DNA of 64,000 nucleotides from Pavona decussata (GCA_977016875.1 CDRNST010000144.1:5332001-5396000); one strand, 5' to 3'. Counted from the first letter of the stretch, positions 43,901 to 45,858 are shown. The notes: generated by a model from the letters alone, not told the origin. Numbers and translations are program-made.

Positions 43901-45858
43901 CCACAGACCTGTTCCTAATTTATTGGAGGAGTTCCAAATTCCCTGAGATCCGGCCATCCCTAATTTCTCAGTCTCTTGATGATTAAGGCCCTTTCTTCGA
44001 CACTCAATTTGCAGAACTCGTTTCATAAATTTATTCCGCCTCAAAAATGAAGATACCTTGAGTTTTAAACAAGAGTTTAACCAGGCTTTATTGTATGGCC
44101 GCCTCCGAGGGAGTAATATGAACCTCATCGAATATAACATCGCTGTGTTATATTGACAGGCTACCCGAGCGAGGAAGAAATTGGAGCAATCTTGCCTGCT
44201 CTGGATTTCCTCGTTGTACCATGGACAATGCAAACCTTTCTTGTTATTTTCAGTAGAAAGGCATACAAAATTGTTCGGAAAACCCTCTATATTTTCTTTA
44301 GAAAGGAAGGGAGCATTTGATATTGGTTCTAGGTATTTTTTTGGTGTTTGCTTCATTTGCATGTTTCGTTGAATCAGCGAGTTGGTCGGTGAGTTGTTGT
44401 TTCCTGATTTTCATCATTCAGACTACAATGCATGAGAACTTAAACTTATTTTTTCTGAGCTTTTAAGTTATGTAGAGTTATGAACTTATTCGCATTCCTG
44501 CATTACTGTTTTCTTAAACACACAGCGTTGTGATCAAAACGGTGAAGTTCAAAAACCATTTTTAACCAACACCGCCTAGGAAGAACCTCGTGATCTGCTA
44601 AAAATGGCGACCAGAGTTGCTGGCTTTCGATTCTTTCGGTATTTGAGAAAAGCTAGACTTTGCTTATCCGAAAATTATTTACTTCCTTTAAGCATTTTTA
44701 AAGTTATTACCCCTTAAAGTTATTTTTTGCATTATTTCATGCTTAAGCCAGTTTCACAATTATTAACTCCTTAAAGTATTTTTTTTGCTTTATTACATGC
44801 ATGCTTTGCTGATGCTCCTGTAAATCCACTAAGAATGAAAATTCAGCATGAGGACGTTCTGTCCAAACACAGCAGTTTTATGTCTCTTATATATTGTAGT
44901 TTGATTAGACAGTAATGACCTCTTACTAAGTAAGCTCGAGGGTCGTACTGGGAAATACTGACGTAAGGTCATTGCAGTTCGGACCGAGTGGCATCTTTAG
45001 CTTCCTTATGAGTTACTTCATGCTCAAGACACGAGGTCTATAAATTCTAAACTATTATCGATACCATCACAGTGTAGCAGCAAGTAAATTTTCCCATCGT
45101 CACAACAATGTAATAAATTGTCCAGATTTTTGTTTCAAATACAAGAAAGCGATTAAATACTGTTTATTCGCAATAGTGCCATGCTATTGCGGCCTTACCG
45201 AAAGATACCAGTTTAAGTGATAATGCAGATGAAACGCAATGTATGTAAAATACCTTTACACTTCCTTTTAATACTAATTGGACCCATCTTAAGAATAATT
45301 TGATGTAAGCTTACTTATACCTTAATCTCTTCCGTCAATGTCATCCCTCGATCGAGAACGTTCTTAACCATGTCATTTGTAACAGGAAAGTTGCTCGGCA
45401 ATTGGCGGCATTTTTCGATCACACTTGGATTGCAACCATTCAGGAACTGGTAGCCAAATATTCGGTCTTCCATCCACAGTTCATCCCGAGAAAGTTTAGG
45501 CACGTCGCCTGTCCAACCAGTGAAGATCTTCTTAAAGCTGTCAAAATTCTCCCAGCTGTCAAATAGAGTGCAGAGGTAGGACAGACCAAGGTTAACTTTT
45601 CCTTTCAGAGCACCTAAATGAAAAGAGCGTGATGCCTCATCAGAGAATTGTGAATCTCGTGGGAGATCGTCGTGTTTGGCGGCGTGAATAAAACCCGGCA
45701 AATCGACTACACCAGGAGGAAGTTGTCCCCAGCGGTACTTCTCTTTACGTTCTTGAATCTCGAGAACTCGCTGAGCACTGATGACTTCCGGTTGATCTTG
45801 AAACGGAAGGAGAGCTATAAATGAAATTAAACAAACAGAATGGAATTCAGCATAACCT

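Follow-up and report, generated by a model that had tools for sequence, protein, structure and literature searches.

Replacement of the substrate-tethering arginine in an uncharacterised AOS-LOX subfamily at a triplicated locus of the coral Pavona decussata

Does a coral lipoxygenase (LOX) that lacks the arginine anchoring arachidonate in 8R-LOX make a different product? The question is posed by a 64,000-nucleotide stretch of Pavona decussata DNA (GCA_977016875.1 CDRNST010000144.1:5332001-5396000; hereafter the window, with positions counted from its first letter), which holds two tandem minus-strand copies of a gene of the AOS-LOX fusion type, A (about 3304-14812) and B (about 40908-50117). 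An earlier note on this DNA had described the LOX domain of B as R-type, had observed that the substrate-anchoring Arg of Plexaura homomalla 8R-LOX is absent from it, and had suggested that the positional specificity or the substrate may differ. We find that the Arg is indeed replaced, and that the replacement falls within a distinct anthozoan subfamily in which the position is labile. A changed specificity is possible, but Arg182 is probably not its main determinant.

The segment at issue, 45321-45814 on the minus strand, is exactly one exon of gene B (exon 5, 494 nt), a multi-exon gene with a probable first exon near 51029-51124. On the minus strand exon 5 is flanked by TTTATAG on the acceptor side and by GTATAAGT on the donor side (AG/GT splice sites). 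Contigs from three public transcript runs (X1, X4 and X8), one from each of three different studies, cover exons only and cross four exon joints (Table 1), and the pieces skipped between the joined exons all run GT..AG on the minus strand; gene B is thus transcribed and spliced as modelled. These contigs link exons 4 to 8, while the haem exons are tied to the LOX part by colinearity with orthologues: full-length orthologues align colinearly over 9-10 exons, so that haem domain, PLAT and LOX form one gene, and the haem domain passes into PLAT inside a single exon (47289-47768). All sequence searches were made exon by exon. Scanned in this way for the iron lipoxygenase family (Pfam PF00305, with PLAT PF01477), gene B gives a PLAT match in exon 4 and Lipoxygenase matches in each of exons 6 to 8 (E = 8e-22 for exon 7 and 5e-25 for exon 8); exon 5 alone lies under the Lipoxygenase cut-off (18.9 bits vs 23.6).

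Residues are numbered below as in 8R-LOX. The numbering was set with the help of the 1066-residue Gersemia fusion, where an offset of 373 recovers His384, His389, His570, Asn574, Gly427, Leu431 and Ile693. In HMMER searches against the Protein Data Bank (PDB), the best matches of exon 5 are P. homomalla 8R-LOX chains (3fg1/4qwt, 2fnq and 3dy5). The translation of exon 5 in B contains ...DEASRSFHLGALKGKVNLG... within the longer stretch ...HDDLPRDSQFSDEASRSFHLGALKGKVNLGLSYL..., and that of exon 5 in A contains ...EEASRSFHIGTLKGKINLG... within ...SEEASRSFHIGTLKGKINLG...; the helix alpha2 stretch aligns without gaps to ...DEKSRSYQESRKAALVNLG... of 8R-LOX, the chains aligned including that of the arachidonate complex 4QWT. 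A MAFFT alignment of 44 sequences gives the same register, the spacing from SRS[YF] to NLG being equal in all 44, every cnidarian LOX among them. In this register Arg182 of 8R-LOX corresponds to Ala in B and to Thr (ACT) in A, Tyr178 corresponds to Phe in both, and positions 184 and 186 (+2 and +4 from 182) are both Lys in A, B and a third paralogue, C, described below. Neither Lys nor Arg thus stands at the equivalent position, and the P. homomalla segment that the earlier note had quoted, SRSYQESRK, agrees with the PDB chains.

The catalytic residues of B, by comparison, are intact. All five iron ligands reported for B are to be seen in the exon translations (His384, His389, His570, Asn574 and Ile693, the motifs being THLMKTH, CQHAAVNF and the C-terminal PNSIAI). 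The Coffa position is Gly427 (NTIGRNEL, aligned to DTIGRKEL), as had been claimed and as the sequence criterion for an R-type enzyme asks, and the Leu431 clamp of 8R-LOX is kept together with it. Because the five iron ligands, the Coffa Gly and the clamp are present, the LOX domain of B should be catalytically competent and is predicted to be R-type; the Coffa rule has known exceptions (PMC11582214). The window proteins also keep Leu385, Ile423, Ile437, Leu442, Thr623 and Leu627. Two features by which 8R-LOX binds its substrate are missing, namely Arg182 (replaced by Ala in B and C and by Thr in A) and the small residue at 589 (Ala; Ser in Gersemia), where Pro is found instead. The segment after HAAVNF also differs in the manner described, reading PMMEITAF in place of SQKDHYGF.

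Exon 5 shows some variation between the contigs of the different studies. Non-synonymous variants, which are presumably alleles, include His179Leu on alpha2 in two runs (position 45619), as well as Ser254Cys, Ile232Leu and Ser222Cys (sites 45395, 45461 and 45490). At codon 182 no variant is listed among the transcript contigs covering this exon. Runs labelled 'coral metagenome' also contain exon 5, and an (AAAT)n microsatellite (45846-45899) lies in the intron, some 30 nt upstream of the exon-5 acceptor, and was passed over as a repeat in the mapping of reads.

Identity between the LOX of B and the characterised octocoral 8R-LOX is 38-57% per exon, and about 47% overall for the subfamily to which B belongs. 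Closer relatives, 66-75% identical over all exons and annotated only as 'AOS-LOX protein-like', come from Montipora foliosa (two proteins), Acropora palmata, Oculina patagonica, one transcript assembly, Dendronephthya gigantea (isoform X2) and Paramuricea clavata. A search of the representative library gave mostly exon-sized fragments, the full-length proteins there being only distant; the full-length relatives were reached through word searches seeded with two such distant full-length matches, P0063 and then P0157. Trees built from exon 5 and from the complete LOX domain unite these relatives and the window sequences in one well-supported clade (98/88 and 99), which stands apart from the classical 8R-LOX fusions of octocorals, from the group of 11R-LOX and from two more clades of scleractinian sequences. 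Exon 7 of B is 86-90% identical to its orthologues.

The fold of the subfamily may be gauged from a Montipora orthologue (P0268), for the LOX part of which an AlphaFold2 (AF2) model was available with a predicted local distance difference test score (pLDDT) of 91 and a predicted template modelling score (pTM) of 0.93. Since the model has a continuous alpha2 helix over positions 172-195, and its best Foldseek match is 4QWT (template modelling score 0.96, root-mean-square deviation 1.7 A), the fold, including the long alpha2, is modelled as 8R-LOX-like. A survey of 2018 recorded no characterised stony-coral LOX (PMC5793058), and our literature search found no later characterisation of one; the description of the enzyme as uncharacterised therefore stands. 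The same survey notes that coral homogenates yield mainly 8-hydroxyeicosatetraenoic acid (8-HETE), and that LOX specificity is not predictable from sequence (PMC5793058).

Position 182 is Arg or Lys in 28 of the 42 aligned sequences, and a basic residue stands there in classical 8R-LOX fusions, anemone orthologues and two more scleractinian clades. Within the subfamily, Arg182 is kept by Oculina, Dendronephthya, Paramuricea and two fragments (P0344 and P0346). It has been lost in a clade of 13 rows, comprising the window genes and the Montipora and Acropora orthologues, and in three other lineages, which carry Ser or Gln. A word search with exon 5 itself brought in 29 further fragments of exon size, drawn from other coral assemblies. 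In the tree extended by these, every member of the acroporid clade has Ala182, with Arg, His, Leu or Ile at 186; its sister group (weak support, 82/80) consists of the window paralogues and three fragments, with Ala or Thr at 182 and Lys at both 184 and 186. A minimum of four changes between basic and non-basic residues is needed at 182 within the subfamily. The position is thus labile here, while it is well conserved in the other clades, and its repeated replacement argues that the Arg tether is not essential in this subfamily.

To our knowledge, the crystal structure of 8R-LOX with arachidonate is the only complex of a lipoxygenase with its substrate.

In that complex (4QWT), as a review of 2026 sums it up (PMC13059375), Arg182 lies by the arachidonate carboxyl and is one of four key residues, Gly427 provides O2 access at C8, and Leu431 clamps C10; with the small Ala589 the substrate slides deeper than in 12S- or 15S-LOX, bringing C10 to the iron. 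The window proteins differ from 8R-LOX on the floor of this pocket, where Ser376 is replaced by His, Ala589 by Pro, and Lys619-Ala620 by Trp-His. Vertebrate 5-LOX has Pro569 and Trp599-His600 in the same columns, plus Phe177 at the 178 position. His376, Pro589 and Trp619-His620 occur throughout the subfamily, whether or not Arg182 is kept, and in the anemone orthologues as well. Because the floor residues are shared with Arg182-bearing members, the floor is uncoupled from the loss of Arg182, and should the specificity of the subfamily differ from 8R, the floor is more likely to be the cause than that loss. The 5-LOX-like floor may be the ancestral pocket floor of animal LOXs. In exon 7, position 411 (HPVFQLLFP) is Gln throughout the subfamily and Lys in 28 of 41 aligned LOXs (VFK/VWK); Gln411 is also found in most of a second scleractinian clade.

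The octocoral AOS-LOX fusions of P. homomalla (PDB 2FNQ, 3FG1, 3DY5, and 4QWT with arachidonate), Gersemia fruticosa and Capnella imbricata agree with the window genes in their single-gene architecture of haem domain, PLAT and LOX and in their iron ligands. Likeness to 8R-LOX extends to Gly427, Leu431, the further retained channel residues listed above and the long continuous alpha2. The window proteins differ in their separate clade and low identity per exon, and on alpha2 in having Phe for Tyr178, Ala or Thr for Arg182, Lys for Ala184 and Lys for Leu186. The characterised G. fruticosa 11R-LOX (PDB 3VF1), which sets a precedent, is likewise an R-type arachidonate LOX with Gly427, has Gly at 182, and has a floor that is also bulkier than that of 8R-LOX (Thr376, Thr589, Met620, Val623). 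It differs from the window proteins in being stand-alone, in belonging to another clade, in its alpha2 (SSLFRVGLADF) and in its pocket residues. Vertebrate 5-LOX (PDB 3O8Y) shares, besides the floor columns and the Phe at 177/178, a Lys (Lys183) at the 184 position, but is S-type by the Ala at its Coffa site, has Tyr181 in place of residue 182, Ala603 and no haem domain, and is about 40% identical; its Lys409, which precedes the Coffa residue, aligns with Ile426 of 8R-LOX. True members of the subfamily are the 'AOS-LOX protein-like' predictions, which share Phe178, His376, Pro589 (Thr in Acropora), Trp619-His620 and Gly427. Among these, the Montipora and Acropora predictions share Ala182, while those from Oculina and the octocorals keep Arg182; residue 186, which is Lys in the window genes, is Val or Gly in those predictions that are not from acroporids.

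The charge lost at 182 may have been made good nearby. The closest relatives that keep Arg182 are P0344 and P0346, 81-82% identical in exon 5, in which residues 182-186 read R-L-K-G-A, as against A/T-L-K-G-K in the window genes. From this comparison, the loss of Arg182 in the window lineage coincides with a change of Ala186 to Lys, Lys184 having been present beforehand. Of the 17 subfamily rows that lack a basic 182, 7 have Lys or Arg at 186, as against none of the 21 rows with Arg182; the corresponding counts at 184 are 14/17 and 3/21. If alpha2 is drawn as an ideal helix, its conserved hydrophobic side, which faces the channel, is made up of residues 178, 182, 185 and 189. Position 186 lies at 40 degrees from 182, one turn on, and 184 about 160 degrees away. 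Residue 186 is normally Leu, Ile or Val, which makes a Lys notable, and the sequences are suggestive of Lys186 as a plausible surrogate tether. Other LOXs hold the carboxylate at other sites, ALOX15 for example by Arg403 (PMC11593649). A literature search for data on R182A or A620H mutants gave no result.

These observations tell against the proposal that the loss of Arg182 drives a different product. His376, Pro589, Trp619-His620 and Thr623 occur in orthologues that keep the Arg, position 182 has switched state at least four times, the Gersemia 11R-LOX has Gly there, and the window lineage has gained a Lys on that face of the helix. The earlier note's reading is thus supported in part: two binding features of 8R-LOX (Arg182 and Ala589) are missing, but Arg182 as the reason for a different product is not supported.

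The wider genome supplies further context. Some 25 kb beyond the window end, a third paralogue, C, is encoded on the plus strand (G000:C144:5411700-5428242; loci L015, L016 and L003). With it, the AOS-LOX cluster is a triplication rather than a duplication, C being inverted. Paralogue C is apparently intact, with all exons open, Gly427, Pro589, Trp-His and PNSIAI, and its alpha2 reads SRSFQKNALKGKVNFG, with Ala182, Lys184 and Lys186. Copy A, in which a nonsense codon interrupts exon 8 while the other exons stay open, may be a young pseudogene or may yield a haem-domain-only product. A six-frame search of the genome returned 14 matching stretches, corresponding to ten LOX genes: A, B, C and seven more distant ones, all seven of which have Lys or Arg at 182. 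Three of the seven are on the same contig (G000:C144 near 5.02, 5.05 and 5.09 Mb; L004-L006), 250-350 kb from the window, and the other four are clustered at 0.34-0.49 Mb of G000:C237 (L007-L014), where the homologue of exon 5 is split differently.

Beyond the gene structure, expression, residue identities and phylogenetic distribution, all of which are shown, we propose, with about an even chance of being right, that B and C encode active R-type LOX domains of a subfamily that can do without the Arg182 tether, the loss of which is lineage-specific and probably compensated by Lys186, and in which substrate and product are set by features shared across the subfamily. Such an enzyme would still take a free C20 or C22 polyunsaturated fatty acid (PUFA) tail-first, its carboxylate being held more loosely, or by Lys186 and possibly by Lys184. 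The position of oxygenation would be set mainly by His376, Pro589, Trp619-His620 and Thr623. Given the biochemistry of corals, 8R would be the most likely position, with 11R possible on account of the bulkier floor. Arg182 would have been replaced on the stem of the clade that unites the window genes with the Montipora and Acropora orthologues, and since the pocket residues are shared with Arg182-bearing orthologues, its loss would be confined to the lineage and probably compensated, rather than mark a turn to a new pathway.

Several considerations weigh against this proposal. The bulkier floor could by itself alter the product, in which case 'still 8R' would be wrong. Co-variation of 182 with 184 and 186 comes down to one independent pair on supported branches, so that the test is underpowered. 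The Acropora orthologues have Ala182 without a basic residue at 184 or 186, and compensation is therefore not general, while Lys184 is older than the loss of Arg182 and on an ideal helix points away from 182. The join of the window genes with the acroporids is weak (82/80) and the exons disagree on the placement within the subfamily, exon 5 grouping with Oculina and the octocorals, and exons 7 and 8 with the acroporids. Finally, the structural model is that of a 74%-identical orthologue, P0268, standing in for the window protein.

An opposing account, which we regard as unlikely, is that loss of the tether, together with the change of Tyr178 to Phe, alters the register or the product, or favours esterified PUFA or other chain lengths, and so feeds a distinct reaction in the haem domain. 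The proximity of Arg182 to the arachidonate carboxyl in 4QWT (PMC13059375) lends this some weight, as does the contrast between three tandem paralogues without Arg182 and seven LOX genes of the same genome with Lys or Arg. The pocket floor, too, is unlike that of 8R-LOX (His376, Pro589, Trp619-His620), but these differences recur in orthologues that keep Arg182, which uncouples the two features; moreover, 182 is labile in the subfamily, Lys186 and Lys184 retain positive charge on alpha2, and specificity cannot be foretold from LOX sequences (PMC5793058). A more far-reaching form, which we would advance only tentatively and think rather improbable, has the tether moved by one helical turn or abandoned and, in combination with the 5-LOX-like floor, a different register or substrate (11R, esterified PUFA), amounting to a second fusion-enzyme pathway.

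Relaxed constraint offers another explanation, by which the LOX domains would be decaying or redundant after triplication and the loss of Arg182 would be drift without mechanistic meaning. The TAA in exon 8 of copy A and its change of Leu627 to Arg fit such a history, and so do the LOX-type genes of the genome, at least ten in number, and the variation of 182 (Ala, Thr, Ala) among the paralogues. We nevertheless consider it quite improbable for B and C, in both of which no exon is interrupted and every iron ligand and conserved channel residue is present. Correctly spliced transcripts of gene B, besides, occur in three studies, Ala182 recurs in the Montipora and Acropora orthologues and so has persisted across genera, and the identity of exon 7 to its orthologues is high. 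Last, the idea that the missing Arg is an artefact, be it of alignment, exon modelling or assembly, found nothing in its favour; it is scarcely credible and we set it aside, since HMMER, BLAST and MAFFT agree on a register of constant length (44/44), transcript contigs from three studies cover codon 182, and near-identical fragments of other assemblies (P0342, P0343 and P0345) carry the same residues.

Table 1. Features of the AOS-LOX genes in the window; joints are those crossed by spliced transcript contigs, and residue numbers follow 8R-LOX unless stated otherwise
Feature	Position	Strand	Remarks
Upstream exons of gene B, catalase-related haem domain into PLAT	about 49704-50117, 48699-48887, 47289-47768	-	tblastn with Montipora, Oculina and Acropora orthologues
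Exon 4 of gene B, PLAT domain	46107..46392	-	Pfam PLAT E = 7e-19; joint 45814|46107
Exon 5 of gene B	45321..45814	-	PLAT-to-catalytic linker, helix alpha2, FGYQFLNGCNP region; HMMER E = 1e-43 to 8R-LOX residues 122-280
Helix alpha2 codons (172-195)	45570..45641	-	continuous helix in AF2 model of P0268
TTT = Phe, Tyr178 position (Phe177 in 5-LOX)	45621..45623	-	
GCT = Ala, Arg182 position	45609..45611	-	transcript contigs cover codon, no variant listed
Lys184-Gly185-Lys186	45597..45605	-	Lys186 on same helical face as 182; Lys184 about 160 degrees off
Exon 6 of gene B, WLLAK region	43444..43707	-	His376 at 43456-43458; joints 43706|45320, 43096|43444
Exon 7 of gene B	42774..43096	-	His384, His389, Leu385, Coffa Gly427 (42956-42958), Leu431; joint 42423|42773
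Exon 8 of gene B	41986..42424	-	His570, Asn574, PMMEITAF, Pro589 (42121-42123), Trp619-His620 (42028-42033), Thr623, Leu627
Last coding exon of gene B	40908..41081	-	ends ...PNSIAI then stop; C-terminal Ile iron ligand
Exon 5 of paralogue A	8574..9067	-	90% nucleotide and 87% protein identity to B; Thr182 (8862-8864), Lys184, Lys186
TAA nonsense codon, exon 8 of paralogue A (B: TCA = Ser)	6339..6341	-	Leu627 to Arg at 6030-6032

Other open reading frames (ORFs) occur in the window. Between the AOS-LOX copies, long plus-strand frames at 33463-34682 and 35400-35810 carry heptad-like Glu/Lys/Leu repeats, coiled-coil-like in character, and probably belong to an unrelated multi-exon gene. Transposable-element-like frames lie at 37438-37959 (+), 59537-59821 (+), 61614-62246 (+), 62851-63300 (-) and 63788-64000 (-). 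By appearance, two of these resemble the tail of a retroelement ORF, and a charged Myb-like ORF adjoins frames with a 'YGDPAYP' motif, which is typical of Harbinger/PIF transposases.

The gene family and its fusion architecture are known already, and databases already list the orthologues as automatic predictions. Three things seem new: that a distinct AOS-LOX subfamily, anthozoan-wide in extent, can be recognised by a 5-LOX-like pocket floor, that this subfamily has lost the 8R-LOX tether repeatedly, and that Arg182/Ala186 has been swapped for Ala182/Lys186 in the lineage of the window genes. We take the absence of Arg182 as a testable lead; it is no evidence of new chemistry.

The view that a tether plus cavity depth determines LOX specificity rests on the structure of 8R-LOX with arachidonate, and the present subfamily offers a natural pair for testing the tether, with relatives 81-88% identical in exon 5 that carry Arg182/Ala186 or Ala182/Lys186 in one and the same pocket. 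Should the change prove neutral, the Arg tether would be shown to be dispensable in an R-LOX. AOS-LOX genes have repeatedly been reported as stress- and wound-responsive in corals, and transcriptome studies of these animals may treat under a single name what are at least three fusion subfamilies distinct in sequence, a point that bears on how their results are read. If the more far-reaching reading, with its altered register or substrate, were true, corals would run a second, undescribed fusion-enzyme oxylipin pathway beside the classical route through 8R-hydroperoxyeicosatetraenoic acid (8R-HpETE) and allene oxide.

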